Position numbers and translations under genes: made by a program. A DNA stretch of 64,000 bases from assembly GCA_002269645.1 (NCBI GenBank), contig NIVC01001630.1:193331-257330 (forward strand). The letters are read 5' to 3'. This document shows positions 8,501-26,317 of the stretch, piece after piece (position 1 is the stretch's first letter; every line of letters begins with the position of its first letter). The stretch is from Macrostomum lignano. Taxonomy: Eukaryota. The notes beneath the pieces are model-generated. The model made no database searches and was not told where the DNA came from. It worked only from the letters and a program-made list of their open reading frames with translations.

Positions 8501-9359
8501 GGGCATTCCTAGTTTGGAATTTGGCACTCTAGTTTGGAATTTGGCACTTCTAGTTTGGAATTTAGCACTCCTATAGTTTGGAATTAGGCACTCCTAGTTT
8601 GGAATTGGGCACTCCTAGTTTGGAATTGGGCACTCCTAGTTTGGAATTGGGCACTCCTAGTTTGGAATTGGACACTCCTAGTTTGGAATTGGGCACTCCT
8701 AGTTTGGAATTGGGCACTCCTAGTTTTGGAATTGGGCACTCCTGGTTTGGAATTGGGCAGTCCTAGTTTTGGAATTGGGCAGTCCTAGTTTTGGAATTGG
8801 GCAGTCCTAGTTTTGGACTTGGGCACTCCTAGTTTTGGAATTGGGCACTCCTAGTTTTGGAATTGAGCACTCCTAGTTTGGAATTGGGCACTCCTAGTTT
8901 GGAATTGAACACTCCTAGTTTGGAACTGAGCACTCCTAGTTTGGAACTGAGCACTCCTAGTTTGGAATTGGGCACTCCTAGCTTGTAATTTAGCACTCCT
9001 TGTTTGGAAACAAGAATGGATTTCTATTGATTACTAATCGAAGGAAGCAAAAGCCACCAGGCTACGAACTCACCTCTGGGTGACGCCGGCAAACAATTTT
9101 GATGCCTTAAAATGCTTTGGTGTTGCAGCTGCTGCTGCTGCGGTATAGCCTTGTTATGCAGTACATTTGAGCAGTCGGACTCAACGTACCAACGCAATTC
9201 ACTCATCCATAGCCGAACCGAGTCCTCCGAAGCTGCCTGCCAAGCGCTGCTATTGATTGACGATGGCAGCGAATGACTGGACGAAACTGCCGAGCTCGAC
9301 GGGGTCGCCGACTTAGCCGGCCTCGACCTGACAGCCGGATCCGTCTTAACAGGATCCAT
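5543..9359 (-). CDS. INSC: Inscuteable homologue, 5' exons (gene continues toward lower coordinates; remaining exons not resolved)
   Basis: Exon 1 9359-9074 (ATG; donor G|GTGAGT) encodes SEDSVRLWMSELRWYVESDCSNVLHNKAI, matching from memory the Insc LGN/Pins-binding motif DSVQRWMEDLKLMTECECMCVLQAKPI. A phase-compatible probable exon 5606-5543 (TTTCAG acceptor) gives VSIEMLELNSRKLLADFNAVL. Confidence 0.75.
5676..6800. repeat. 34-bp minisatellite (CTACTCTACCTGTGATTCACCGGTTATCTACTAG)n
   Basis: About 33 highly homogeneous tandem units. Confidence 0.95.
7540..9005. repeat. 21-bp minisatellite (TTGGAATTGGGCACTCCTAGT)n
   Basis: Tandem periodicity; explains the ELGTPSL ORFs. Confidence 0.95.
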
Positions 9360-10125
9360 ATTGGTTGTTCTCGTCGGCGCAATGCCCAACATTGTTTTAT
9401 CAAACAGTGGTTTAAGTGCTTTGCTAATTGTTAGCTCGTTGCACAGAAGGCTGAGCTCCGTCGATCGTGATTGCCTCTCATTTCATTTTCGATAGTAGAG
9501 GTCTAATAACAATAAAGTTCTCTTTAGTTAACAGTAAGTACAAATATATGTGCACAAAACCATGGACTGTGCGCTGAGTGAGGGATTGAAACAATTGTAA
9601 AAATCCTGGCGTGCACACAACACTTCGATTTTGTCTGGGTCTTAGGGACGGTCTGGCCTAGCAATTTAATAATGGCATGCGTATGTATAGCGTTGCGTCG
9701 TTGGCTTGCGCAAGTTTCGCGTGCAAACATGCGTATAGTAGCTAGGGGGAGGCTAGATTTAAATCCTCGCCGTCTGAGGGAGAGGACATTGTGACTGGAG
9801 AGGGACAGAAGGGCAGACAGAGAGAGAGAACTTTCATTGGCTGACTGCGTTTCATGTCCAATCCTATGATCGCGTCGGGAATTTACTCACAAAAATTGGC
9901 GGCATTTGCATTTAGTACCATTAATTGATTGAAAATTTTCGCGATGCTACTAACTAGTAGCTTACGTAAGGAATCTGTTTATTTAATTTAAAAAAATCTA
10001 AGGATCTAAGCATTTAAGAAGCATTAAAAATTCTAAAAGTTTCTTCATGAGCGCAAAAATAGCAATAAACGTTTTAAAACTTATTTCTTTAAGCAGGTGT
10101 TCACGGTAATTCAAAGAGCTCTTAA

Positions 10126-13100
10126 TTACTCTTTGTGGATTCCTGCAGTTTTTGCTATCTCAGCATTCAATTTGGACTCGCTTCTGATCCCAGTTTGCTT
10201 CAGAAGTTCCGGGATGCTAGCCGCATTTAGTTGCTTCATCAGGCTTTCAATGCTTCTGATGTTTAGCTGTGCCATCAGATCAGAGACACTGCGAATATTA
10301 AGTTCAGACATCAGACTTTTGACACTTTTTAATCCAAGCGTGTGCAGAAGATCACTTAGTTTTGAGCTGCCCGTCTCAACAATCAGACTGGAGAGATTCG
10401 AAATATGAAACTGCTTCATCAGAGACGTAACATTGCAGATACCAGTCTGTTCCATGAAAGCCTTTAAAGTTGGAAGACCCACTTTACGAACGATTTGCCG
10501 TAGGTTCTTGGCGTCAAGTTGCTTCATTAGTCCTTGAACATCCGAAATTCCCAGCTGACTCATTAGACCTTGGAGATCAGGAATGCGTACTTGTTTCATC
10601 AAGCTCTTAAGGTTCTGAAGTCCGACCTCTCGTAATAGTTGGTGCAGACTCTTTGACCCCAGCTGGTCCATCAGCTTTGGAACGTCGGTAATGTTAAACT
10701 TGGTCATCAACTCTTTAAGATCGTCAAATCCAGCTTCCTTGATTAGAGCGCCCACTGTTCGTACACCGCAACGCTTCAGCAGTTGACGTAGGTTCTTGGC
10801 GTCGAGTTGCTTCATTAGTCCTTGAACATCAGAAATTCCCAGCTGACTCATTAGACCTTGGATATCAGGAATGCGTAATTGTTTCATCAAGCTCTTAAGG
10901 TTCTGAAGTCCGACCTCTCGTAATAGTTGGTGCAGACTCTTTGACCCCAGCTGGTCCATCAGCTTTGGAACGTCGGTAATGTTAAACTTGGTCATCAACT
11001 CTTTAAGATCGTCAAATCCAGCTTCCTCGATGAGAGCGCCCACTGTTCGTACACCGCAACGCTTCAGCAGTTGACGTAGGTTCTTGGCGTCGAGTTGCTT
11101 CATTAGTCCTTGAACATCAGAAATTCCCAGCTGACTCATTAGACCTTGGATATCAGGAATGCGTACTTGTTTCATCAAGCTCTTAAGGTTCTGAAGTCCG
11201 ACCTCTCGTAATAGTTGGTGCAGACTCTTTGACCCCAGCTGGTCCATCAGCTTTGGAACGTCGGTAATGTTAAACTTGGTCATCAACTCTTTAAGATCGT
11301 CAAAGCCAGCTTCCTTGATTAGAGCGCCCACTGTTCGTACACCGCAACGCTTCAGCAGTTGACGTAGGTTCTTGGCGTCGAGTTGATTTATGAGGTCTGT
11401 TAGAGATTTGATTTGTAGTTCGTGTCTCAGGCCACGCAAACTTTTTATTCCGAGTTGCTTTAAGAATGCCATTAGGTTTTTGGAACCCGTTTTTTTCATC
11501 AGTTGTGACAGCTTCTTTACATTTAACTCTTTCATTAGCCCATATACACCCTCAATTCTTGCCTGAGTTAATAAATCTGGAATGCTTGTCACACTTAGCG
11601 TTCGAACTAGATTATTGAGGTTTGGCGAGTTCAGCTTTTTCATCAAAGTGGCCAGGTTTTGAGCCTTAAGGCGTCGCATTAGGTCACGGAAGTTCAGCTG
11701 CTTTAGCTTCTGCTGAAGTGCAGAAAAGCTGGACACCTTCAGAGCATTCATCAGTGTTTCGATATTTCGGCCATTGGCAAGGTGCCTCAGTCCGGGGATT
11801 TTTTTCAGGGCATGTACACTCTTGAGAGGTTCCAAATATTTTGACAACTTGTCAGTTATTCTGTTGACTTTCTCGACGACTGGAATTCTGGATATCGCTT
11901 TTTTAATTAACCTATCGGCAGCTTTGATTTTCTTTAGTCCCGAAATTGATTTGATAACTTTGCGAACTTTTTTCTCCATTCTTCTGAGCTTCCGGAGTCC
12001 CGGAATCCTGTCCAACACTCCCGGGCCGTACTTGTCAACGAGTTTTCTCAGAACAGGGTTCCTGTTTACAATGCCTGTGATCTTGGCGTGTACACCTTTG
12101 ATTTTCGCAACAGCAGGCAGTGCGTTGAGCTTTGCAAAAACTTTTGTCTTTAACGCTGTAAGCTTTTTTACAATCGACAGGCTCTTCAAATTTGCAGCTA
12201 TTTTAGACTTTATTAAAAGAATCTTCTTTACTATCGGTACAGCCTTCAATTTTGTGATGATGAACGTCTTGGCTGCCACAAGCGGCTTTACAAACAGCGT
12301 CTTTGCAGCGGCAGCCGCGACAGCTTTGAATTTAACGACAGCAGCTGCGACAGCTTTGGCTTTAACAAAAGCGGCAGCGGCGGCTTTGACTAGGAATGGC
12401 ACAAAGAAAAATTTTTTTGGATGCCTTCGTGGTTTCTGAAATTATTATTAATAATTAACTCAATTAGTTGGGGTGAATAAATTTAGACAATCAGACAATA
12501 TAGCTGGTATCTCGTAAATGTATTACGTGTTATTCGATAACAACCAATATGAAAGCTAATGAGCGCTACGGTATCAAAAATGTACTATTGAGCGCATACA
12601 TGCGCAACCCCCCTGATTTACACTGGCCATGCGATTTAATTTTTGACCAAAAAATGCGACTTACCTGTGAAAGAAACCCTACAGCAACATTGACGCAAAT
12701 TTTGGGTAAACGGCAGGAGTAACTATAACTGTTCTTTAAGGGCTAAATGCCTCGTCATCTAATTAGTACTACGTCTGTATTCTTTGGGGTGGGCATTTTT
12801 GCAACTCCTGGTCCACCACAATTTACGGTGGCTAGATCGGCCAGGTCAGCCAGCAGTTGCGCATGTATGATTGAGCGTGAGCGTGTGTCTGAGTGCATGT
12901 CTGGCGCTTTGTATCAGGGTGACTACCAGCCCACTTGCAAACTTCTACTTGTCTTATGCCTTATTGATGTTTACTCACATCCAATTCTTGAGGTCCAACG
13001 TACGCGGGCAGATTGGCTGTCTGCAGAGCATCCTTAGACTCTCTGGCCTCCTCGACATCCAAATCTGTTGCTTGACAGGCGACTACAGCGAGCAGCAGTG

Positions 13101-13128
13101 CAAGGCCGCCGATAGATATTAAGCGCAT
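10126..13128 (-). CDS. Secreted prepro-protein A (~819 aa): signal peptide, acidic propiece, Lys-rich amphipathic region, ~45 x 12-aa helical repeats
   Basis: Exon 1 13128-12979: MRLISIGGLALLLAVVACQA TDLDVEEARESKDALQTANLPAYVGPQELD|GTGAGT. Exon 2 12435-10126 follows a TTTCAG acceptor, phase 0 (KPRRHPKKFFFVPFLVKAAA...), in frame with the 758-aa ORF. AATAAA on the minus strand at ~9978-9983. Confidence 0.85.
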
Positions 13129-13654
13129 GGCTTTCTTTTGGAGATTTTAGTAAATTGTTTAGCGATAGTTTTTGAAAATTTAATTTAATATTGAGTTTTG
13201 GGCGTTGCCTGATCAGTTCTTCGGGTTTTAATAGAAATGCCGCATCCGAGAGACCCCGCGAAGCCATCCACACGAAAATAGCAGGATATGACAGTATAAA
13301 ATGAATCCTTGATTTTTAGTTTCGCATTTTCGGTGATTCTCCTAAGCAGTGCATCGCCCCCCATCCAAGAGTGTCAAACCGTAATTCTGCAAATTTTCTG
13401 TCCTTGCTTTTTCATCTCCGTCATTTTTTACTCCAGGATTTGAAAAAACTAAAGAGCAATGAGAAAGACAGAGAGCTAACGATACAGTGCGTAATGTTTA
13501 AAAAAAGCAGATTTTTATAAAAGCTTTATTAATAAGTTGTGATAAAAAGTCCGAAAGTGGTATTTAAAATATTAAAACACACTACACTCATTGTATTAAT
13601 TTTCGTCCTCCAGGCCAAGAACAGATTATAGAAAATACCGATGTGACGACGTAC

Positions 13655-14125
13655 CTGGTGCTAAATCCACTGGTGGTAAATCAGCCTGGTGCTAAATCCC
13701 CTTGGTGCTAAATCCCCTGGTGCTAAATCCCCTTGGTGCTAAAGCCCCTGGTGCTAAAGCCCCTGGTGCTAAATCCCCTGGTGCTAAATCCCCTGGTGCT
13801 AAATCCCCTGGTGCTAAATCCCCTGGTGCTAAATCCCCTGGTGCTAAATCCCCTGGTGCTAAATCCCCTGGTGCTAAATCCCCTGGTGCTAAATCCCCTG
13901 GTGCTAAATCCCCTGATGCTAAAGCCCCTGGTGCTAAATCCCCTGGTGCTAAATCCCCTGGTGCTAAATCCCCTGGTGCTAAATCCCCTGGTGCTAAATC
14001 CCCTGGTGCTAAAGCCCCTGGTGCTAAATCCCCTGGTGCTAAATCCCCTGGTGCTAAAGCCCCTGGTGCTAAATCCCCTGGTGCTAAATCCCCTGGTGCT
14101 AAAGCCCCTTGTGCTAAAGCCTAAA
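13655..14125. repeat. 15-bp minisatellite (GCTAAATCCCCTGGT)n
   Basis: Tandem periodicity; explains the AKSPG/VLNPL ORFs. Confidence 0.95.
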
Positions 14126-14166
14126 GTGCTAAATGCTCTATGTCTCATAAAAAAACCTTTAAAATA

Positions 14167-15157
14167 CGGGTGTCCAAAAAGTAGTGATACTTTTAACCGT
14201 AGCTCTCGTTCTGTAGCTTCCTGTGATTTAAAATTTTATGAACTGATAGCGGAAAATCTCTTCTACAGACTGCTTTTTGAATTTTTAAAATTGATACTAG
14301 AGAACAAAAGTTATACCCACAAAAGTAACAGTACCTGTACTATAGAGTTACACAAATTATAGGCTGAGCTTCACGAGATCCATGCCGAGTAAGCTTCGAT
14401 GAATTGTTGATTTCGGCTTGTCCAACCTGTCAGCGATCTCTCTAATGGTCATTCGGGAGTCCTCGTCAAGAAGATTCAGAATGGAGTCCGCCAGTACATC
14501 AGGTCGATGAACGTATGGCCGCCCCGTCCAATGCTGATCTGCCAAGTCAATCCTTCCCTCGCTGAACTGCTCAATCCATCGATAAACTGTCATTTTGCTG
14601 ACCGCAGAGGATCCGTGCGCAGAGCAAAGTTTTGCGTGAATTTCTGAGGCACCATGGCCAGCGCCCCAAAGAGTGAAGATAGTACTTTGCTGAGCAACAA
14701 CTGAGTGCACATTCATGTGTGTTGTCGAGTATGGGCAATGAAATCATGAACGAATCGCAAAATGCAAGCGATCCTCTGTTTGCAAGTAAAGTAATGCATT
14801 TAATGCTTTATTTTTCTGCGCCTGATCCCGTCCATAGATAAATTTCAGTCAGTCACAGTGAGCATCATTTTGCAATTGGGCTTTGGTATTGCTTAAACAA
14901 GACATTTATCGATGCCTTCTTAATGAATGAGTGCAGAAGTCAACTATTATAAATTTCGATATAATTTGTGTAACTCTATGGTACAGGTACTGTTACTTTC
15001 GTGGGTATAACTTTTGTTCTCTAGTATCAATTTTAAAAATTCAAAAAGCAGTCTGTAGAAGAGATTTTCCGCTATCAGTTCATAAAATTTTAAATCACAG
15101 GAAGCTACAGAACGAGAGCTACGGTTAAAAGTATCACTACTTTTTGGACACCCCTCG
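14167..15157 (-). mobile_element. Non-autonomous Tc1/mariner element with ~195-198 bp inverted ends and TA target-site duplication
   Basis: 14167-14361 is the reverse complement of 14960-15157. The intact end reads TA-CGAGGGGTGTCCAAAAAG. TA at 14165-14166 and 15158-15159. Confidence 0.9.
14357..14716 (-). pseudogene. Truncated mariner transposase (paired HTH DNA-binding region only, no DD34D domain)
   Basis: ASEIHAKL..AHG..AVSKMTVYRWIEQF..G..DLAD..TGRP and DSRMTIREIADRLDKPKSTIHR..LGMDLVKL are mariner N-terminal motifs; the frame stops inside the left inverted repeat. Confidence 0.9.
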
Positions 15158-15631
15158 TACAAAATCTGAAACCTATCCGCTCTTGTTTGATATGTTTAGG
15201 CAGACACATTCTTTTGGAGGTAGAGTTAGTTATAAAACTTAGTCAGAGACCCTTTTTTATATTATACTGTTGAAATTTTGCTATATTTAGCTTTGCACTG
15301 AGTCAAAGGTACGTCATTGTCGATTGTACGTCATTGTGCACCAGAAAGGCTTTGAAGAAAGCGAAACGGATTCCCTTTTAGTGCCAGGAGCGCAAAATAT
15401 CAGCCCACTGCAGGACCCTAATAGAAGATTAAATCCGTCTTTTTCATAATTTCTTGCATCGCTCCGTGTTACAAAATCCTTGATTACTTAGCGAGCTCGG
15501 CCTTCTAAATTCATGAGATGCGCGCAAACGAGAGAAGAAGTATATATATAAACTAAAATATCGTCGATTTACGAGCTAATTTTCGTCCTTGTTATTTTTC
15601 TTCAAAAGATTGCTTACCTGCAAATTGAATC

Positions 15632-16606
15632 ATGCGCTTAAGGAGTCAAATATTTTTCGGAGTCTGTCTAGCTGTGTTGCTAGTGACTCAGGTCTGCTGC
15701 GACAGCGAGAAAAGTCATACTGACGATTTCGATGAGCAGCTGGCAGAGACGGCCAAAAGCTTGGTCGATAGCGAAATTGGTACCGCTGAAGATCCGTTTG
15801 CAGATTTCGATGTGAGTCTAAACCCTTGGAGTTTGTTGCCTCAAGAAGGCGGGTAGATGAGAGAGGAAAAGAGAGGGAATGAGGGAAGGAGAAGAAAGAT
15901 GAGATAAAATATGAGGGAGAGAGGGATGAGAGAAGGTGTTCACGGCTGTTCACTCCAAGGACTGGGGGGTCGCCACACACACCCTCAATTACCCAGCTAA
16001 TGCTGGCACCCATTTTACAGCTGGGTGAACTGAAGCAATGCAGAGTTAACTGTCTTGTTCAGTGACACAAATTGTTCCAGTGGGATTCGGGAATCGAACC
16101 CCCGACCTTCAAGTCTTTGACCACTAGGCTACAACCCTAGCTGCGACACGAGAGGAGAGGAGAGAAAAGGATAGCAAAGAGGAGAGATAAGATGAGAGAG
16201 GAGAGAAGGGATAAGATAGGAGAGAAGAGAGCTGAGAAGAGACACAAACCTCAATCGAACGGGCTTGCTATTGTAAAGTTTCAAAGGACCCGAGGACGGG
16301 ATAGAGAGGCTTCATGGGCAGCATGTGGACGTCGGGTCGGAGTTGTTAATCTTGTTCAATAGATTTCCGGACCAAAGCTAAAGTCTGAAGTTGAAAAAAA
16401 GTTCTAACTTCTGCGAGCATCTCTTATGTTTTTTGTCCCATTGTCCGACAAGTGACCGATTACATTCGGTCAGGGTCTTTACCTCGGGCTCTGTTTAGGA
16501 ACTTAAATTGACGTTCCCTTCTATAGTATCATTACAATACAAGCTATCTACTAAACTACAGGATGCGGAGAGGCTGACAAAGAAGTGGCAAGAAGTGGAC
16601 GAATAA
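15632..16606 (+). CDS. Secreted acidic prepro-peptide B (exon 1 firm, exon 2 tentative)
   Basis: Exon 1 15632-15811: MRLRSQIFFGVCLAVLLVTQVCC DSEKSHTDDFDEQLAETAKSLVDSEIGTAEDPFADFD|GTGAGT, phase 0. Candidate exon 2 16562-16606 (CTACAG acceptor) gives DAERLTKKWQEVDE* with AATAAA overlapping the stop. Confidence 0.6.
15940..16138 (-). mobile_element. tRNA-derived SINE with CORE-like domain
   Basis: Minus strand: A-box-like TAGCCTAGTGG (16131-16121), B-box GGTTCGATTCCC (16100-16089), then GAACAAGACAGTTAACTCTG...CAGCTGTAAAATGGGT resembling the CORE-SINE domain. Confidence 0.7.
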
Positions 16607-16849
16607 AGGACGGTTCGGCAAAATGAATAACTTTTCAATATTAAAGTTGTTTGCTGTTTCAAAATCAGTGAAACATCGGCGCGAATTTTTGCTAAATAAC
16701 ATCTGATAAATTTGTAATTATTATAAATATATAGTCTCGATAGGTCAGTTTTCTTCTAACTAAAGGCTGTTGGATTGTCGATTTTTTATTTTAAATTTCT
16801 GCTACATGTAGCCATCTACCTGTAAATGTGGGTATCTCTATGTTACTCT

Positions 16850-17420
16850 TTCCCTCAGATTTCTCAGATCTCCCTCAGATCTCCCTCAGATCTCCCTCAG
16901 ATCTCCCTCAGATCTCCCTCAGATCTCCCCGAGATATCCCTCACATTCCCTCAGATTCCCTCAGATCTCCATCAGATCTCCCTCAGATCTCCCTCAGATC
17001 TTCCTCAGATCTCCCTCAGATCTCCCTCAGATCTCCCTCAGATCTCCCTCAGATCTCCCTCAGATCTCCCTCAGATCTCCCTCAGATCTCCCTCAGATCT
17101 CCCTCAGATCTCCTTCAGATCTCCCTCAGATCTCCCTCAGATCTCCCTCAGATCTCCCTCAGATCTCCCTCAGATCTCCCTCAGATCTCCCTCAGATCTT
17201 CCTCAGATCTCCCTCAGATATCCCTCAGATCTCCCTCAGATCTCCCTCAGATCTCCCTCAGATCTCCCTCAGATCTCCCTCAGATCTCCCTCAGATCTCC
17301 CTCAGATCTTCCTCAGATCTCCCTCAGATCTCCCTCAGATCTTCCTCAGATCTCCCTCAGATCTTCCTCAGATCTCCCTCAGATCTCCTTCAGAACTCTA
17401 AAATCTCCCTCAGATCTCCC
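16850..17420. repeat. 11-bp minisatellite (CAGATCTCCCT)n
   Basis: Tandem periodicity. Confidence 0.95.
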
Positions 17421-17464
17421 AAAGAGGAACCCTCTTCCCTGGCCTTCTCCGAGTGCCTTCCAAG

Positions 17465-17615
17465 TGACATTTGACTGTCAGTGACACTTGACTATCAGTG
17501 ACATTTGACTGTCAGTGACACTTGACTATCAGTGACATTTGACTGTCAGTGACACTTGACTATCAGTGACATTTGACTGTCAGTGACACTTGACTATCAG
17601 TGACATTTGACTGTA
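17465..17615. repeat. 17-bp dimer repeat (CAGTGACACTTGACTAT/CAGTGACATTTGACTGT)
   Basis: Two 17-mers alternate. Confidence 0.85.
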
Positions 17616-18247
17616 CAGATTTCTAAATCTGTACCTGCAGGGGGTCGAGTCCTCATATGCGACACTAATAAACAGCGCTAAAATTTCACTCAAATGATGA
17701 AAAAATCACTGAAAAAACTTAGGAGACAATATATAGGAGCTGATCAGAGAATATAGCGCTCGATATTCTCTGGAGCTGATTGACGGCTGTCTGATCGCAA
17801 ATTAATCTATTTCTACCATAGATTGCTCAAAGTACGTATTAAATTAGCGTCTCAAAGCCATTTCCCTTAGCTTCAACTTGCTTCATTTTTGCTACCCAAA
17901 ACCAACACAAATTAAAAGCATCTGCACAACACGGATCTTCTAGCAAACTTCAAACCTGGATTTGGATGAGTTAGTAGTTTATTTTGCTTGTGATTTTTCC
18001 AACCGGAGACAGCTGAACTAATAAATCATGGATGCTTTTCATCACAATATTTTCTTGTCTACAATTTCAGTGATCCTATTGTCTTTGTTTTGCTGCACAG
18101 TTTTTATTCTCTGAATATTCATTTTACATTGTGCCGAAGGGCGTAGACTATCAATGGCCAGTATGAGCTAGTTTAGCTAGCAGGTTAAACGATCTATTAG
18201 GGGGAGGGGCGAAAGAGACTGAGATATAAGAGCAGGGAGACACACAC

Positions 18248-18251
<4 letters not shown>

Positions 18252-18311
<60 letters not shown>
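18252..18311. repeat. (AG)n microsatellite
   Basis: Direct. Confidence 0.95.
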
Positions 18312-18316
<5 letters not shown>

Positions 18317-18639
18317 GGAGTGATATTATTCACATATGCTAAATATTTAATTTACTATCTATACGCTACTATCACGATATGATATCCTCTGCCGTAATAC
18401 ATGTTGCAAAGTTATAGCAATTCTATCGTGATTAAGGTTATGAGAAGTCTTATTTGAAAAAAGTAATAGCTCTTATTTAACTACCCATGGAGTAGCTAAT
18501 ACATGAGAATAGTTTATTTTTTGTATACGAGTGTACTATCAATTTTTCAATCAACTATATTTTTTATGGAAAACGGGTCTGATCAACTGGTTAAACGTAT
18601 ATCAAAGTTTTGTAAACGAAAGTTTTTTTTTGTTTTTTC

Positions 18640-19310
18640 TTATTCCAACTCGCCAAAATCGTTGCCACCCTCAATCTGTGGTATCGGGCCGGGCGGCGGT
18701 GGCGGCCTATTCGGCGTCGTAGCTGGCGGCGGCGACTCAGTAGTAACGCGCTGCGTTGTTGGCGGACGGGCTGTTGTCAAAGATGCTCGAGTAGTTTTAG
18801 GTGTCGGTGGAACCATAGTCTTCCTTGATCTTCCGTTCCGGCGCCATCCTCCCCAGTGGCGTCGCCAGGGTCGTCCCCAACGGCCGCGACCTCGACCCCA
18901 GATCGGCCGACGTCGATTCCACCCATATCGTTTAAAAACCCGCTTGATTTGTTTTGCTGCACGCCGAATCCTTCTGAATCGGGACTGTTTCTCCGCTTGA
19001 TCGATTTCCTGTTTGTTTATTTTTTGGTATCGTTATTTTATGTAGACATGAACTAGCGAAATTCAAAACAACGAGTCGGTCGCAAAAAAACTTACGTCAT
19101 CTTCTCCATCTTCGTGGTCGTTAGGAAGGCTTTCCTCAGCTGAAGAATCTTGACTTTCAGTGGCTTCCTCTTCACTGTTAATATCGTCGATGGCTTCAGC
19201 TAGTTGATGGTCTTCACGCTCTGCAGGGTCATCGTGGTAGCGGACGGCGCTACCTGTTGCTAGTGGCAGCAGCTTGGCGGTAAGAAGCGCTGCATGGCAA
19301 GAAATCGCAT
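18640..19310 (-). CDS. Secreted prepro-protein C: acidic propiece, Arg/Trp-rich cationic peptide, Thr/Pro stalk (1-nt frameshift in the signal peptide as assembled)
   Basis: Exon 1 19310-19096: MRFLA(fs)AALLTAKLLPLATG SAVRYHDDPAEREDHQLAEAIDDINSEEE...EDGEDD|GTAAGT. Exon 2 19008-18640 (AACAG acceptor, phase 0): EIDQAEKQSR FRRIRRAAKQIKRVFKRYGWNRRRPIWGRGRGRWGRPWRRHWGGWRRNGRSRK TMVPPTPKTT...ELE*. Confidence 0.75.
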
Positions 19311-19867
19311 ATTTTTGTATTTTCTACCGGCTGTAAAGAAGAGAAAGTATCAGAAATTAACTCGGCTCCGAGATACAGCTTAAGCGAAAATTTATTTTAA
19401 AAAGATTTCTTTTCGAATTCCCGGATTTTCATACTCAATGAAGTCCTGGATATGCAGAGCCAACAGTTGTTTTGAATTGGCGAGTCACTACTAATAGCAT
19501 CATAAAGTTTTTTTTCCGAAAAAATTTCAAACAGAATGAACGAGGCATAAGATGCATCTGCAGTCAAGCTCAAGTATCACCTGTGTGTATTCCAATGTTT
19601 TACTCTTAATAGACACCTCAATAGTCGTAGCGCGAGACTAAATAGTAGAAAAAAAAGTGAGGATTAAGGCTGGCGCATTTTGCTCTTAAGTCTTTCTCGT
19701 TTTCAAAGTTCTTAGAACCGCGTATGCGAAAATATTGTCATTTCAGCTTTTTTATTTCAGTCGGACAATCGAAAATAATACGACACCAGAAACCAAGAGA
19801 TTTAAAGAGTTAAGTTAGATTTTGACTTAAGACTTTTACGACGCTTTTCTCGCTGAAGGCAGCTAGG

Positions 19868-21760
19868 TTAGAATGTGCACAGAGTCTTGACAGATCGGCA
19901 GCAACCACTCTGACACTGTCCGCAGTAGGTCTTAGCGTTTCCAAGGTCATTATTGTCTCGCAGGTACTTGATATAGTCCTTCCATCCTGTGCACGTGTCG
20001 CCCCAGGAGTCACCCCAGAAGCAGCTCTCGTCGGCTTCGGGAGCGGAGGTGTCGCTAGCGCACTGGCCGTCCCAGTTGCAGCTCTTCTTGTTGCCGCAGG
20101 GTGTGCCAACGGGGGCCCGGAGACCGCCGCCAGTCACTCCGCTTGAAGAGCCGGCGGTCGGTGTGCAGAAGATCTTGGCGCAGATCAGTGCCGGATTAGA
20201 AGAGACGTCATCAGTGAGGAAGAACTTGCCCGGACTGGATGGATAGGCGAGGCGACACACCTGGTCCAGGGTCATGCGACCACCTTCGCGAGTCGTTGTA
20301 GCCACAGAGGAGTCTGGAGAGCCTTGACGCGACTTCAAGCACTCGGCCTTGCCTAATAAGTTGTAAATTTTATAACTATTTGTAATTTTTCAATAATTTT
20401 GCAAAAAGCCTGTATGTTAGATCAAGGACCACTATGAACACTAGGAACAAGTCTAGTAGTCCTTGTGTTAGATTTGTGCTGCGTACCTGTAGCCAGATAG
20501 TTTTTCATGAAGGTCACTGTGCAGGGAGAAAACCTATACGAGTTGGCGACGTCGCTAAGGGAGTATGACCCCGCAGAAGGCGACATTAGGAACTTGTAAG
20601 CCACTTTGCACGCCGGTTGGTCATTGTCGTGATCGGATCCCATGTTGTGGGCCAGCTCGTGAGACGCTGTGCCCCAGCTTTGCAAGCCCTGGTCCTCATT
20701 GATGCTAACTCGCGTGTCCTGACAGGCGCCTCCAACGTAAGCCATGCCGCACACTGCGGTGTTGCCGCCACTCTGGATATCCGTGCGCGTAAACGCCATC
20801 ACGTGATCGGCAGTCTTGCCAACGGCGTAAGACTTGATGTAGCCGAGGATTGCACTGGCGTCGGTTGCTGTTCAGTAGCGGATTGAGGAAGTGATAATTT
20901 AATAGATTTAGCTATTTCAGAATTATTAGCAAAATTTATCGTACTTACCGTCAGACGAACCAGCTGGAGGCATCCATTGCGAATCAGCCTGCGTCTTTGC
21001 CACGGTGAGGCCGGTGCACTTGACACTCATAGACGGGTTTCCGACGTTTCTGAACGCTGTATCGATTCCGTTCAAAATGTGCGTGTAATAATAGTGAAGC
21101 TCTGTCATAGCTGCAGCATCAGTGCTGTAAATTGTCTTAAACGCGTTCCACACAGTGTGGTCCAGAAGCAAAAGGAGCTCCACCTCAAGATCTGTAGCAG
21201 CTTGATTGGACTGACGCTTCTTGCGGCTCATTACTTGCATGACCTTCGACTTGTCAATCTGCGACTCAATACCGTCTGGCTGGGCAATGTTGCGTGTGAC
21301 TTGATGCTCTGAAGCACCGCTTGGCTTGACGAAATAGGATGTACCTTCGTGCATCACGTGACCGCTGAAGCGTTTCTTTCCCTTCTCGTGTCGAACACTG
21401 ATGACAGACTTGCTCTCGATGTCCCTGTAGTGAGCGTGACTCGCGTGGTGAGCTTGGCGAGCTGAAAAAGTCCTGGAGACTCCATTCTCTCTCACGGTCA
21501 TTGGCACACTCTCAAAGGCGTCAGTCTTTTCCAATGGAATGCGGACCTTCTTGTTCGTGCTGGGCAGCTGTACTTCGATCTCCATAGACGAAGGATGCGG
21601 TCCATCGTTGCTGGATCGAGTCACAGACACTGAAGCCTGGGCCGCAGCAACAGCGAGCAGAAATATGACTGCAAAATTGATAGATAATTACGCTGAAAAC
21701 TTGCTTCGATGTTTGTTGTGACACATGAATGATAAATCACTACTTACCAAGGCGCAGCAT
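19868..21760 (-). CDS. Secreted M12B (ADAM/ADAMTS-like reprolysin) zinc metalloprotease, copy 1
   Basis: Exons 21760-21748, 21668-20949, 20867-20487 and 20352-19868, all with phase-1 GT-AG introns. Signal MLRLVIFLLAVAAAQA, furin site SRKKR, HELAHNMGSDHD zinc motif, LMSP Met-turn, ADAM Cys-rich domain (TLDQVCR...CGNKKSCNWDGQC), Cys-rich tail. Confidence 0.9.
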
Positions 21761-23159
21761 TTTCAGAGCGCTGGTCAAAACGACAATTTGTAGGTTTCTG
21801 TTCCACTCAGACACAAGGTTTAAGTGGGCTTATCTTTATCGGCAAGGATCAACCACTGACCGTCTTCGTTTTTATGCTTTTGATCGCAGTTGTAGCGGAT
21901 ATTGGTTAAGCACAATTAATTCCTGGCCACGACTTTGGCAACAACGATTGCCAGCTTGGACTTGACCAACTATAGTCATTGAAATGCCAGAACTTACCAG
22001 TCCGGATATTAAATTCCGTAAATAAAAGATTACCCTTCCACGACCCATGACGCTACTAAAGATTTTCGAAAAAAAATGTTCGTGAGAGCGCATCTTCTCG
22101 GTCTCATAAATGCCATTAAAACTAAAAAAATCAAGCACCAGCAATTTCCGGGGATTGTTATTCCAACTGAAGTCGATCGTTTTTTTAAAATTCAATTCGT
22201 GTCGAACTTTCTTGAACACTTCGACACGTTCGAATTTAAGCTGTAGCATGAGATGCAGGGCAAAATTTCAAATCCATAGCATGCTTGATGGATTCGATCA
22301 GGCAACGAGTCAATAAACATTCTTGATTAGTAGAGTATAAATTTTATGCACTCCCAAATTTCAAAATTTAGGAAATATTACTACTCTATAATGTTAGCAT
22401 TTTAGCAAATCAGTTGCTTCGCAGAAGTTTCAGAGGGTTAAATGACTGGATTTTTCATGCTTGATGATACAACAACTGTTGAAAGGTTTGAAATAGCCGC
22501 ACTGTATAAACGCTTTGACATATCGTTGACAGCGAGCGTACGAGTCGTATATCAGTTTGAAGCTGTCCAGAGCACCCCGGGAAGAGTATGCATGACGCAT
22601 GGGAATGCAATTTTCTATATGTGAGCGTCCACACATTCCATTTCGTTTCCTGACTTGCACTAATTATTTTTTAACACTGCATCAAAGTATTTATACTTGT
22701 GGTTCGTCAAACCGACCATCGATCAGAATTCGTATTCACGAGCTTGTAGACTGCAATAAAAAAATTACAGACAAGAATTTCTGTAGCATTGGAGAATAAT
22801 TGTTCGATACTTTCGAATTTTCTTGGAAATAATCTATCGAGGTGAGACTTGAGTTTTTTTTAATTTTTTAATTTCAACAAAAACTTCTTGAGAGAAAAAA
22901 AAGTTAAGTATAATAGAGATAAGTATAGGCTAAAACTGGATCAATATGATAGATTGGGCAAGCATAACTCCACCCAAAGCTAGCTAGCTGGTAGCACTTG
23001 TTCAAGCACGAGTTAAAACAAGTTAAACTCAATACATAGAAATTTCACTTCCGTACATTGTCCGCATTCCACTGCGAGAACAGATCTTGCGTTTATAAAA
23101 AACTAAAAAAACGCTACTGGCAAAAAAGTATTAAAGATAATCATTTTATTCATACTTAA

Positions 23160-23862
23160 CACGCCTCCCCTGAAGAGAGAATTCGGTCGATAAAATATGC
23201 CCTGAAAACTACTGATTTCCCATGAATCCATGACCCAGCAGAAGTCCAAAAAAGCAATCCTAGAAATCCTATCGCATTGTCTGCACAGTGTACAGGTATG
23301 CAAAATATTACAGTGACTTTAGTTGATATCGGTATAGAATGAAACTAATCCATTCTGCCAGAGCCTCAGAAGTTGGCCTTTCATGGCTGAGTATCGCCTC
23401 AGGCCAATCGCACGGAATCGAACCAACTATACATGCATACATTTTTTCGCAAGAGGCAGCTGCTCAGCCTCTCAATTGCTTCATCAGTTGTTTATTATTA
23501 AAGTGCAGCCGAGCTCTGGCAGCCCGTCTCTATTCTGTCCAGCTCTCGGCCTGCCCAGGACAGTGCGGGACTCACATATAGGCTGATTTTGGATTTCACA
23601 CGGTTTATCTGTGCACTGCGGCTGCCTGGCTTTTTTATTGCATTTTGCACTTGGTGACCGGCACTTTAGCATTTCACTGCTGAGATTTGTCAACTCGAAA
23701 GCTCAGCTTCTCTACTCTCCATAAGATCCCAGCTCAGCTTCTTTGTTCTCTATCAGATCCCAGCTCAGATCATGCAGACTCTGCTGGGTCATGGATTCAT
23801 GGGAAATCAGAAGTTTTCAGGGCATATTGTATCGACCGAATTCTGTCTTCAGGGGAGGCGTG
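23160..23862. mobile_element. Non-autonomous TIR element with TTAA target-site duplication (piggyBac-like MITE, 703 bp)
   Basis: TTAA|CACGCCTCCCCTGAAG... at left and ...CTTCAGGGGAGGCGTG|TTAA at right; ~83-bp imperfect inverted repeats (23160-23242 vs 23780-23862). Confidence 0.8.
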
Positions 23863-24325
23863 TTAAGCCCATTCAATTAGAACTTTATAGCAATACAATC
23901 CGAACTAAAAGTTTTTGTACAATCAATTCTATCCAATCAATTTAATACAGCGTTTGTTGGTAAGTTTCGATAACAATACATGCATGCTCTCCAATAAATG
24001 TTTCGTTTAATCGTAGATTAACTTCATTCAGATACAGCCCAGAATAGCACTAACACAACTAACTAGTCCTACAAGCAACATGCGCTCAAGGACAACTATG
24101 TATGTTAGTTAAGTAGTCCTTGCATGCGCTGCGGCAGCTTTATAATTAATAAATTGCCACAATATTTTTACCAAAACAGACACGCCTTGACTGATTAGTC
24201 TTTCTTTTTATGCATTTATTCTCCTCTTTTGTATTTTTCTATCCGGTATGTTTCTATTAACGATGTAATAATCTCTATCTTCCGCTTCAGTGCCCGCACA
24301 CGCGGCAGCGAACCAAAGAAAACCG

Positions 24326-26317
24326 ATGAAAATGCTGAAAATAGGTGAGTTAACCACAGAACATACAGAAGCTCTGTGGAGTCAACTGCATATGCTTCAG
24401 GAAATTAATTACGTATGTTTACGAGTCGTACGTGCTCAATATTTTAGCTATATTTCTGGCCGTCTCTGCGGCAGCCCAGGCCTCGGTGTCCGTGACGCAA
24501 TCCAGCGGTGACGGACCTCACCCGTCCTCCATGGAGATCGAGCTCCAGCTGCCCGACACCGACAAGAAAGTCCGCATCCCGCTGACCAAGACTGCTCCGT
24601 TGGATGGCGCTGTGGTCACTGTGACGGACGGTGGAGTCTCCAGGACGTTCTCTGGCCGACAAGCTCAACACGGAGATCAAGCTCACTACAGAAACGTTGA
24701 TAGCAAGTCAGTGATCAGCGTTCGACACGAGAACGGCACAAAGCGCATCAGCGGTCACGTGATGCACGAAGGCACCTCGTATGTCATCCAGCCGATCGGC
24801 GACTCTGGGCACCGCGTCTCCAAAACCAGCGAAACCGCGGATGAGCCGCAGCCCGAGCAGTTGCTGAGTCGCAAGAAACGCCGAGTGAACCGAGAGGCTA
24901 CCGAATACGAAGTTGAGATCCACATCCTCATTGATCACACCGTTTGGAAGGCTTTCAAGACAATTTTCGGTACAGATGAAGAAGCCCTGACTGAGCTGCA
25001 CTTCTACTATTCTCACATTGTGATTGGCATGGACACGGTCTTCAGGAACATCGGCAGTCCGTCAATCAGTGTCAGGTGCATTGGGTTAACAGTAGCCAAG
25101 ACTGAAGCCGATGCAAAGTGGATGCCACCGGATAGCTCGGCTGATGGTACGCGCTTTAGTGCGCTTTTGTCTTACTTGACATACCTGAATTAGCTGCAGG
25201 GGGTTCTGGGCGTCCGGAAACAGCGAAAAGGCGTTGAGAGAGTAGTAATTTGAATAATGTGTAATTTAAAAACTATTTCAGCGTTGAAGTGTTCTCTCAA
25301 ACAGATTTTTTAGCAAGCGATGGTGGTGCCACTCTCGGCAGAATCCGAGCGTACTCGAAAGGCGACAGAGCCGATCACGTGATGGGCTTCACCCGGAGAG
25401 ATATTTCGCTAGGCAAGAACTCTGCGGTGACAGGAGTCGCTTTTGAAAATAGCGCCTGCCAAGAGACGAAGGTCAGCGTTGTCGAAGATTCCGGCCTCCA
25501 CAGCTGGATGACGGCCGCGCACGAGCTCGCGCACAACTTGGGGGCCAGTCACGATAATAACGAACCCGGATGCGAAATGGATCTGAAGTTCATAATGTCG
25601 CCTGCCGCTACATCCTACGATCTCAGCAACATAGCCAATTCCTACCGGTTCTCTCCGTGCACAGTGGGGCAGATCAGGACCTATCTCGACTCCGGTAAGT
25701 TTTTCGCGTTTCTTTGAGTTGTTTTATTTCTAAGGAATTGTCTAATTTGGAAATCAGAGCTTTTCTTAAGCTTTGACGCAAAGAAGTGAAAAACATTGAT
25801 ACGTCAAAAATATTTGAATGCCTAACCAGGAAAAGCAGCGTGTCTGCAGTCTCGTCAAGGCACCCCCGTCAGCCAACTGACAAGCTCTGTCCGCGAAGGA
25901 GCTCGCATGTCCCTCGATCAGGTGTGCCGTCTCAATTACCCATCGAGTCCCGGCAATATTTTCTTGACGGAGGACGTTAAAGCAAACCCGGCTCTGATGT
26001 GCGCCAAAATGCACTGCCTCTTGAAGGCCGACCACGCACACGGAACAACTAGCACCGGCTTCCGCGCCCCAGTCGGGTCGCCCTGCGGCAACAAGAAGAG
26101 CTGCAATTGGGACGGCCAGTGCGTTGCCGACGAAGCAGCACCCGCTGCAGACGAAAGCTGCTTCTTTGGCGACATATGGGGCGACCAATGTGGGGGGTGG
26201 AAAACCTACATCGAGTACCTGCGCAACACGGATCAAAAATCTCAACGCAGGAGCTACTGCGGCCAGACGCAAACGAATTGTTGCGCTAGTCTCAAGAATT
26301 TGTGTCGGTTTGATTAA
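24326..26317 (+). CDS. Secreted M12B (ADAM/ADAMTS-like reprolysin) zinc metalloprotease, copy 2
   Basis: Exons 24326-24344, 24448-25146, 25314-25694 and 25830-26317, same intron positions as copy 1. Signal MKMLKIAIFLAVSAAAQA, SRKKRR, HELAHNLGASHD, IMSP, ADAM Cys-rich domain; AATAAA at ~26468. Confidence 0.9.

Follow-up and report, generated by a model that had tools for sequence, protein, structure and literature searches.

The 64-kb stretch of DNA analyzed here (the window; positions count from its first nucleotide) is the terminal 64 kb of the 257,330-bp contig NIVC01001630.1 of Macrostomum lignano (GCA_002269645.1, Mlig_3_7 assembly), the genome of which is that of a recent, hidden polyploid, and the protein of one of its genes, MP-B, finds a 100% match in Macrostomum lignano BOX15_Mlig001203g4. 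Positions 10126–26317 hold a run of five genes that belong to four unrelated protein families, since genes 1, 2, and 3 are unrelated to one another and to the two metalloproteases MP-A and MP-B. An initial annotation had recognized five consecutive genes here, placed between INSC and a RhoGEF gene with introns swollen by minisatellites, and the run and its position are borne out, the gene models, worked out by hand, having GT-AG introns throughout. The exons of the five genes are as follows.

10126–12435, minus strand: gene 1, exon 2, 769 codons and a stop, encoding KPRRHPKK, a Lys/Ala/Val-rich block, a basic linker, and repeats
12979–13128, minus strand: gene 1, exon 1, an open reading frame (ORF) with a GTGAGT donor, encoding the signal peptide MRLISIGGLALLLAVVACQA and a 30-residue acidic piece (net charge −6)
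15632–15811, plus strand: gene 2, exon 1, encoding the signal peptide MRLRSQIFFGVCLAVLLVTQVCC and an acidic region (annotated as PAA65661.1, Mlig004062.g2)
16562–16606, plus strand: gene 2, exon 2, encoding DAERLTKKWQEVDE, followed by a stop
18640–19008, minus strand: gene 3, exon 2, encoding an Arg/Trp/Gly-rich basic block and then a Pro/Thr-rich tail
19096–19310, minus strand: gene 3, exon 1, with the ATG, a signal-peptide remnant, and a 57-residue acidic block (−21)
19868–21760, minus strand: MP-A, 532 residues, exons 21748–21760, 20949–21668, 20487–20867, and 19868–20352 (identical to PAA65662.1, Mlig018498.g2)
24326–26317, plus strand: MP-B, 531 residues, exons 24326–24344, 24448–25146, 25305–25694, and 25830–26317 (PAA65663.1, Mlig001203.g4)

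On one side of the run lies an INSC exon (9024–9392, minus strand), recognized by a weak INSC_LBD match in the window and by Insc_C on the homeologous copies, and on the opposite side is the start of the RhoGEF gene (about 28397, minus strand), with minisatellites abundant in both flanks according to Tandem Repeats Finder (TRF). Other properties that had been ascribed to the run hold only in part. Introns described as mostly short are indeed so in the proteases (79–158 nt) and in gene 3 (87 nt) but not in gene 1 (543 nt) or gene 2 (750 nt). Signal peptides had been claimed for all five products, and N-termini that resemble signal peptides are seen in gene 1, gene 2, MP-A, and MP-B, as judged from sequence features (a basic residue at position 2–5, a 10-residue hydrophobic core with a Kyte-Doolittle mean of 2.6–3.3, and small residues at −3/−1), but not in the window copy of gene 3, where the ATG is out of frame. 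Three prepro-proteins with an acidic propiece and a cationic payload had also been proposed, and while genes 1 and 3 have this layout, gene 2 is purely acidic (mature part −13).

We consider it probable that this run is not a secretion system but a series of five genes, confined to the Macrostomum lineage, for ordinary cargo of the secretory pathway. The suggestion that the window may hold an undescribed secretion system is not apt for products that are ordinary cargo targeted to the endoplasmic reticulum (ER). A cluster event can be demonstrated in one case only, the inverted tandem duplication of an ADAMTS/MIG-17-like M12B zymogen that lacks a thrombospondin type-1 repeat (TSR) and comes from a family that has expanded in Macrostomum. 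The two M12B proteases of the initial annotation thus stand, although they amount to one duplication event, so that the number of independent secretory genes side by side is four at most. By a rough estimate, which assumes that 10–15% of about 45–70 thousand genes encode signal peptides, several runs of four secretory genes would be expected by chance. The five upstream regions have no 7–9-mer in common, although this is a weak test. The physical adjacency of the genes is real, while shared regulation or function is unproven.

MP-A and MP-B are head-to-head paralogs that are 60% identical, and the deposited PAA65663.1 corresponds to our MP-B model plus an 11-residue upstream extension. The layout of MP-A is a signal peptide, a propeptide, an RKKR site, the zinc motif HELAHNMGSDHD, a disintegrin-like domain, and a tail with six cysteines, and in both genes the sequence coding for the signal peptide is split by a phase-1 intron. 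Two Pfam families score above threshold, Reprolysin_5 (43–50 bits, cut-off 27) and Reprolysin (40 bits, cut-off 20.8), and the zinc motif HExxHxxGxxHD is intact both in MP-A and in MP-B (HELAHNLGASHD), with H323, E324, H327, G330, H333, D334, and the downstream M348 invariant in an 11-sequence alignment of the family. By motif and profile, therefore, MP-A and MP-B are M12B metallopeptidase zymogens. The ADAMTS_CR_2 profile is near threshold in both (MP-B 26.3 bits and MP-A 23.1 bits, cut-off 27.3), TSP_1, the profile of the thrombospondin type-1 repeat, has no Pfam match at E ≤ 0.1, and the proteins end about 60 residues after the disintegrin-like domain. The C-terminus is a module of about 55 residues with six cysteines, the likeness of which to PLAC is one of cysteine count only, judged by eye, and the isolated tails have no Pfam match to PLAC even at E ≤ 10. 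The closest sequence matches in the PDB are ADAMTS-5, -4, and -1, spanning the catalytic and disintegrin-like domains. An alignment-based AlphaFold model [predicted local distance difference test (pLDDT) 58.7, predicted template modeling score (pTM) 0.63] retrieves the ADAM17 zymogen (prodomain and catalytic domain) and ADAMTS1/4/5 in Foldseek, with probability 1.00.

The prodomains (residues ~18–150) contain no cysteine, hence no cysteine switch, and end in RKKR. In the proposed route MP-A and MP-B would enter the ER by way of the signal peptide, would be kept latent by an M12B-type propeptide that works without a cysteine switch, and would probably be activated by a furin-type convertase at RKKR. 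The family comprises 13 clusters in Macrostomum lignano, while outside Macrostomum only one Bugula protein (26% identical) was found. A gap-free ortholog of MP-A, 72% identical to it and only 57% identical to MP-B, is encoded by mRNA contigs (about 1.9 kb, without introns) from four RNA-seq runs (SRR28338163-66). It follows from these identities that the duplication of the two genes predates the split between the species. The Mlig prefix denotes a transcript cluster at 95% identity. The "g4" in Mlig001203.g4 was considered as the mark of a fourth gene in a multi-gene transcript and this was rejected, as the gN suffix numbers near-identical copies on different contigs.

The order INSC, gene 1, gene 2, gene 3, MP-A, MP-B, and RhoGEF recurs in one homeologous copy (L002) and in two others taken together (L003 plus L004), all of them 91–99% identical homeologs. 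As it is seen in such recent homeologs only, the conserved order is uninformative on selection for linkage. The L003 and L004 contigs (NIVC01000695.1 and NIVC01000208.1) both break off within the protease pair, where the one supplies what the other lacks, and they are probably one homeologous locus that was split by the assembler at the inverted duplication.

Gene 1 encodes a product of 819 residues in two exons, with a net charge of about +79. Its parts follow one another as an acidic piece (−6), KPRRHPKK, a Lys/Ala/Val-rich block (+28), a basic linker (+21), and then the repeats, and the charges by segment are −6 and then +28/+21/+36. The repeats are 46 units of twelve residues in perfect register, with the consensus [LIV]xxL[ML][KR][QK]LxIx[SDN], and autocorrelation with BLOSUM scores has peaks at lags 12, 24, and 36 only. 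Three near-identical super-repeats of 96 residues lie within the repeat region, and a run of T nucleotides in exon 2 differs between copies.

10495–11385, minus strand: gene 1 super-repeat, 3.1 tandem copies of a 288-bp (96-residue) unit with eight 12-residue repeats each (TRF, 98% matches)
12407–12411, minus strand: gene 1 T-run, 5 T in the window and 4 T in L002 and L003 (alignment)

The gene 1 ORF is intact in all three genome copies (the window, L002, and L003). Compared with L002 there are 17 synonymous and 8 non-synonymous differences, the ratio of non-synonymous to synonymous proportions (pN/pS) being 0–0.22 depending on the segment, and all four of the differences in exon 1 are synonymous. 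Because non-synonymous differences from L002 are few and the ORF is open in three copies, gene 1 is, as judged by the comparison of copies, a real coding gene under purifying selection. The T-run would decide which of two overlapping donors, GAT/GTGAGT or GATGTGA/GTAAAC (exon/intron), keeps exon 1 in frame in a given copy. The gene has no NCBI annotation in any of the three copies and is absent from the NCBI, UniRef, and Logan-derived protein sets. The predicted product would be a Lys-rich, all-helical protein of ~770 residues built of 12-residue repeats behind a short acidic piece, and a single-sequence AlphaFold model is likewise all-helical, although unusable (pLDDT 44.8).

A word-indexed protein search with gene 1 gave no match, and nothing close was returned when 1.8 billion representatives were searched exhaustively with HMMER. 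The latter search did return matches at the level of the repeats, at 14–28% identity, to long repeat proteins, several of them of bacterial type, and both these proteins and the period-12 repeat of gene 1 (E = 3e-15) match Pfam MgtE_N. Gene 1 thus resembles the helical repeats of the MgtE_N/FliG type, which occur in bacterial eCIS-core and tape-measure-like proteins, in having a period-12 repeat, but the similarity is restricted to the repeats. Gene 1 belongs to an animal, is spliced, and encodes a signal peptide, and none of the other Pfam matches of those proteins (eCIS core, phage minor tail, and ASC channel) has a counterpart in it. Acquisition by horizontal transfer was considered and rejected on account of the splicing of the gene, its signal peptide, and the confinement of the matches to the repeats; the likeness would be most simply explained by convergence of a simple helical repeat.

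The joined product of gene 2 (74 residues) is identical to PAA65661.1. Its predicted mature part, 51 residues with a net charge of −13, is without a basic payload and would be released as a polyanion. A stretch of its intron (15940–16140) resembles, on the reverse complement, the T-arm of a tRNA (GGTCGGGGGTTCGATTCCC), and although neither ARAGORN nor Rfam makes a call, this is probably a tRNA-derived short interspersed nuclear element.

The opposite charges of neighboring genes 1 (about +79) and 2 (mature part −13) allow a reading in which the polycation and the polyanion, divergently transcribed, form a charge-pair material, either an adhesive or cement with its releaser or a coacervate pair. 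The two genes are head-to-head, and a copy-specific transposon accounts for about 1 kb of the 2.5 kb between them. The arrangement parallels a model of adhesion in which release of the cationic adhesive protein Mlig-ap1 is brought about by a small negative molecule, and which calls for a small negatively charged releasing factor not yet identified (PMC6410801). The releasing vesicles, however, are low in protein and PAS-positive (PMC6410801), and gene 1 has no similarity to Mlig-ap1 or Mlig-ap2, a Pfam scan finding in it none of the domain types of these two proteins (vWD, TIL, EGF, TSP1, and C-type lectin). Moreover, no peptide of genes 1–3 or of the proteases, and no Mlig identifier of gene 2 or the proteases, is among the footprint and tail mass-spectrometry entries listed, which is a weak negative. 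We regard such a material as highly improbable.

The third precursor, gene 3, would consist of an acidic, then an Arg/Trp/Gly-rich, and then a Pro/Thr-rich part. Its basic block has a charge of +24 with 20 R, 6 W, and 8 G and contains RFRR, RIRR, KR, and RRR sites. In the window the ATG (19310) opens an ORF of 16 codons only and the long frame starts one base off, the result of a 1-nt gap between 19294 and 19293 relative to L003 (CCATAGCAG in L003, CCAT-GCAG in the window), which limits the precursor layout of this copy, since here the ATG and the signal peptide are in different frames. In L003 gene 3 is intact and the ATG reads through MRFVAIAALLAAALLPLATG into the same protein. The only indels relative to L003 within the shared reading frame are of 3 nt and 12 nt, and these in-frame indels argue for coding. 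Given that the L003 copy is intact and that the indels in the shared frame are in frame, the comparison points to gene 3 as a real gene family, of which the copy in the window is either broken or mis-assembled; errors of a single inserted or deleted base are typical of long-read assemblies. Relative to L003 pN/pS is ~1 (19 non-synonymous and 6 synonymous differences), and hence the gene appears to be either fast-evolving or relaxed. It has no NCBI annotation in the three genome copies and no match in the protein sets searched. A 165-codon ORF at 18503–19000 (plus strand), antisense to exon 2, was taken as a by-product of the Arg/Gly/Pro-rich composition of the coding strand and not as a gene.

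Gene 3 is 100% identical in the window and in L002. This was considered as a sign of constraint and rejected, since the whole tract of 18.5–20.8 kb, introns and spacers included, is nearly identical, and for the same reason the frameshift that these two copies share reflects shared history and not constraint. The tract (18520–20800, ~2.3 kb, comprising gene 3 and the 3′ half of MP-A) has 2 differences from L002 while its flanks differ by 2–6%, which suggests gene conversion or very recent shared ancestry.

These features also bear on the reading that gene 1, gene 3, or both are non-functional in the window copy, as decaying or silent ORFs, in which case the run is reduced to gene 2 and the protease pair. 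Consistent with this, both genes are missing from the NCBI, UniRef, and Logan-derived protein sets, gene 3 is frameshifted at codon 6 in the window and in L002 with a pN/pS of ~1, and the exon junction of gene 1 carries the 1-nt T-run difference between the window and the other two copies. Yet the 769-codon frame of gene 1 is open in three copies with a pN/pS of 0.1–0.2 and only synonymous changes in exon 1, gene 3 is intact in L003 with its shared-frame indels in frame, and single-base indels of this kind are typical of long-read assembly error. We therefore hold non-functionality to be unlikely.

For MP-B there is published evidence of expression. Its cluster, Mlig001203, is classed as Tail and OvI_up (Brand et al. 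2020, PMC7336406, Additional files 10 and 16), that is, tail-enriched and up-regulated in grouped worms, and two transcripts, RNA815_5875.1 and RNA815_5875.2, were localized in situ to "prostate;testes;pharynx" and "prostate;pharingeal glands" [sic], respectively (PMC7336406 tables, from Weber et al. 2018). The probe primers of RNA815_5875.1 map to exons 2 and 3 of MP-B (24700–24723, 0 mismatches; 25618–25641, 1 mismatch). The reverse primer of RNA815_5875.2 lies in exon 2 of MP-B and its forward primer, at 23833–23853, maps to the window copy only, where it falls within the right inverted repeat of a transposon situated 460 bp upstream of MP-B.

23155–23867, unstranded: non-autonomous DNA transposon of 713 bp, flanked by TTAA at either end, its terminal inverted repeats 88 nt long; not present in the other genome copies
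23833–23959, plus strand: non-coding 5′ exon of MP-B isoform RNA815_5875.2, with its donor at 23960, the acceptor ending at 24290, and a start that falls in or upstream of the right inverted repeat of the transposon

After removal of the first coding intron and of the 5′UTR intron (23960–24290), the RNA815_5875.2 amplicon is predicted at 651 nt, compared with 653 reported. Because the forward primer lies in a copy-specific transposon repeat and the amplicon size fits, this isoform is one made from the window copy, with its start inside the transposon or beside it. The element seems to provide, or to border on, an alternative promoter or first exon of MP-B. The data support MP-B as a documented gland product, so that the reading as secreted gland products holds for at least one gene. 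Genes 1–3 and MP-A were not found among the entries of the published in situ hybridization lists. PMC7336406 gave the only match to the locus, none of its Mlig identifiers or peptides being among the entries listed in the supplements of PMC5816591, PMC5730564, PMC5977470, and PMC6410801, and a full-text literature search for these identifiers found no paper.

The proposal of the initial annotation that this is a gland locus is accordingly upheld for MP-B, which is found in prostate and in pharynx or pharyngeal glands, while a functional link among the five genes is unsupported. In its stronger form the proposal is that the five genes are a co-regulated gland locus (prostate/seminal fluid or pharyngeal) the products of which are co-secreted, with the proteases perhaps processing the neighboring precursors. 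That MP-B is a tail-enriched, socially up-regulated product of the prostate and pharyngeal glands speaks for this, as do the secretory appearance of every product, the fast evolution of gene 3 (pN/pS ~1), which is usual for reproductive or immune secreted proteins, and the position of gene 3 on the same strand as MP-A and 558 bp downstream of it, with a strong AG acceptor just upstream of the gene 3 ATG. In addition, ~7% of Macrostomum lignano transcripts are multi-gene precursors (PMC5730564). On the other hand, the expression data cover one of the five genes (MP-B), the upstream regions have no common motif, and none of the copies has an annotation for gene 1 or gene 3. Furthermore, the cleavage sites, being basic, fit convertases of the furin type and not metzincins. 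On balance we regard a co-regulated locus as rather unlikely, although it is the least improbable of the alternatives considered. More speculative still, and improbable in our view, is the extension in which the five genes are one co-expressed prostate or pharyngeal gland module, the products of genes 1, 3, and 2 being charge-packaged in a coacervate-like form and matured or remodeled extracellularly by the adjacent MIG-17-like proteases. Were this true, the module would be a physically linked secreted toolkit in the seminal or feeding secretion of a hermaphrodite.

The reading of five ordinary cargo genes, neighbors by chance except for the protease pair, must itself be weighed against several observations. 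Genes 1 and 3 are in no annotation and may be silent or stage-restricted, and gene 3, with its pN/pS of ~1 relative to L003 and a frameshift in two of the three copies (the window and L002), could be decaying. Conversely, the adjacency of a polycation, a polyanion, and an ampholyte, together with the location of gene 3 only 558 bp behind MP-A, could mean a functional link. What the locus adds is two coding genes that are missing from the annotation, the 819-residue gene 1, which is under purifying selection, and the fast-evolving, Arg/Trp-rich gene 3. They are new, unannotated orphan genes that are worth annotating, while the proteases are additions to the known M12B type. Genes 1 and 3 adjoin a gland protease that responds to social group size and, if co-expressed with it, they would be candidates for components of the seminal fluid or of a feeding secretion. 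The locus is otherwise ordinary, made up of secretory genes that are neighbors by happenstance and of one tandem duplication.

No paralogs of genes 1–3 occur elsewhere within the window, and Rfam and tRNA scans of the window gave no RNA genes. Two intergenic spacers contain minisatellites (13654–14118, 15 bp × 31; 16851–17420, 11 bp × 52), the copy numbers of which vary among the homeologs and which give rise to long spurious ORFs on both strands. The transposon between genes 1 and 2 is an insertion specific to the window copy and retains the remnant of a Mos1-type helix-turn-helix (HTH) ORF at 14357–14716 (minus strand).

14168–15153, unstranded: mariner-like element between genes 1 and 2, internally deleted, its inverted repeats 194 nt long and 99% complementary

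Several known systems resemble parts of this locus. Genes 1 and 3 share with the precursors of antimicrobial peptides and toxins, in which an anionic propiece precedes a cationic peptide, the order of a signal peptide, an acidic block, di- or polybasic sites, and a basic part, although this is a likeness of layout only. Plausibly, in the products of genes 1 and 3 the basic part would stay masked by the acidic piece until cleavage by convertases at the RR or RxRR sites. The Arg/Trp/Gly-rich block of gene 3 resembles the Trp/Arg-rich antimicrobial peptides. Neither gene, however, has sequence homology to a known peptide family in the Pfam and protein searches, the product of gene 1 (~770 residues) is far too large, and gene 3 has a mucin-like tail. 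Among the Macrostomum lignano prostate and seminal-fluid candidates (Weber et al. 2018), MP-B belongs to the same tail-specific, socially sensitive screen and stains prostate gland cells, but, unlike Mlig-pro1-76, it is not prostate-limited (it is also found in testes and in pharynx or pharyngeal glands) and hence is not among them, and transcripts found in "prostate plus elsewhere" were considered less probable candidates for seminal-fluid proteins (Weber et al. 2018).

The proteases also have counterparts. Snake-venom metalloproteinases are likewise secreted M12B zymogens of exocrine glands and are among the sequence and fold matches of MP-A and MP-B, but they match in the catalytic domain only and more weakly than ADAMTS, and nothing suggests that the Macrostomum enzymes are toxic. 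ADAMTS in the strict sense require the thrombospondin type-1 repeat that MP-A and MP-B, like the TSR-less proteases of the ADAMTS family, lack. The same order of domains is found in MIG-17 of C. elegans, which consists of a signal sequence, a prodomain, a metalloprotease, a disintegrin domain, and PLAC (PMC4856095), matching the signal peptide, prodomain, M12B catalytic domain, disintegrin-like domain, and short C-terminal Cys-rich module of the pair. The MP tail, however, is not called as PLAC by Pfam and the MP prodomain has no cysteine, and the likeness to MIG-17 is put forward as one of layout. MIG-17 is a muscle-secreted remodeler of basement membranes, whereas MP-B is reported from the prostate and the pharyngeal glands.

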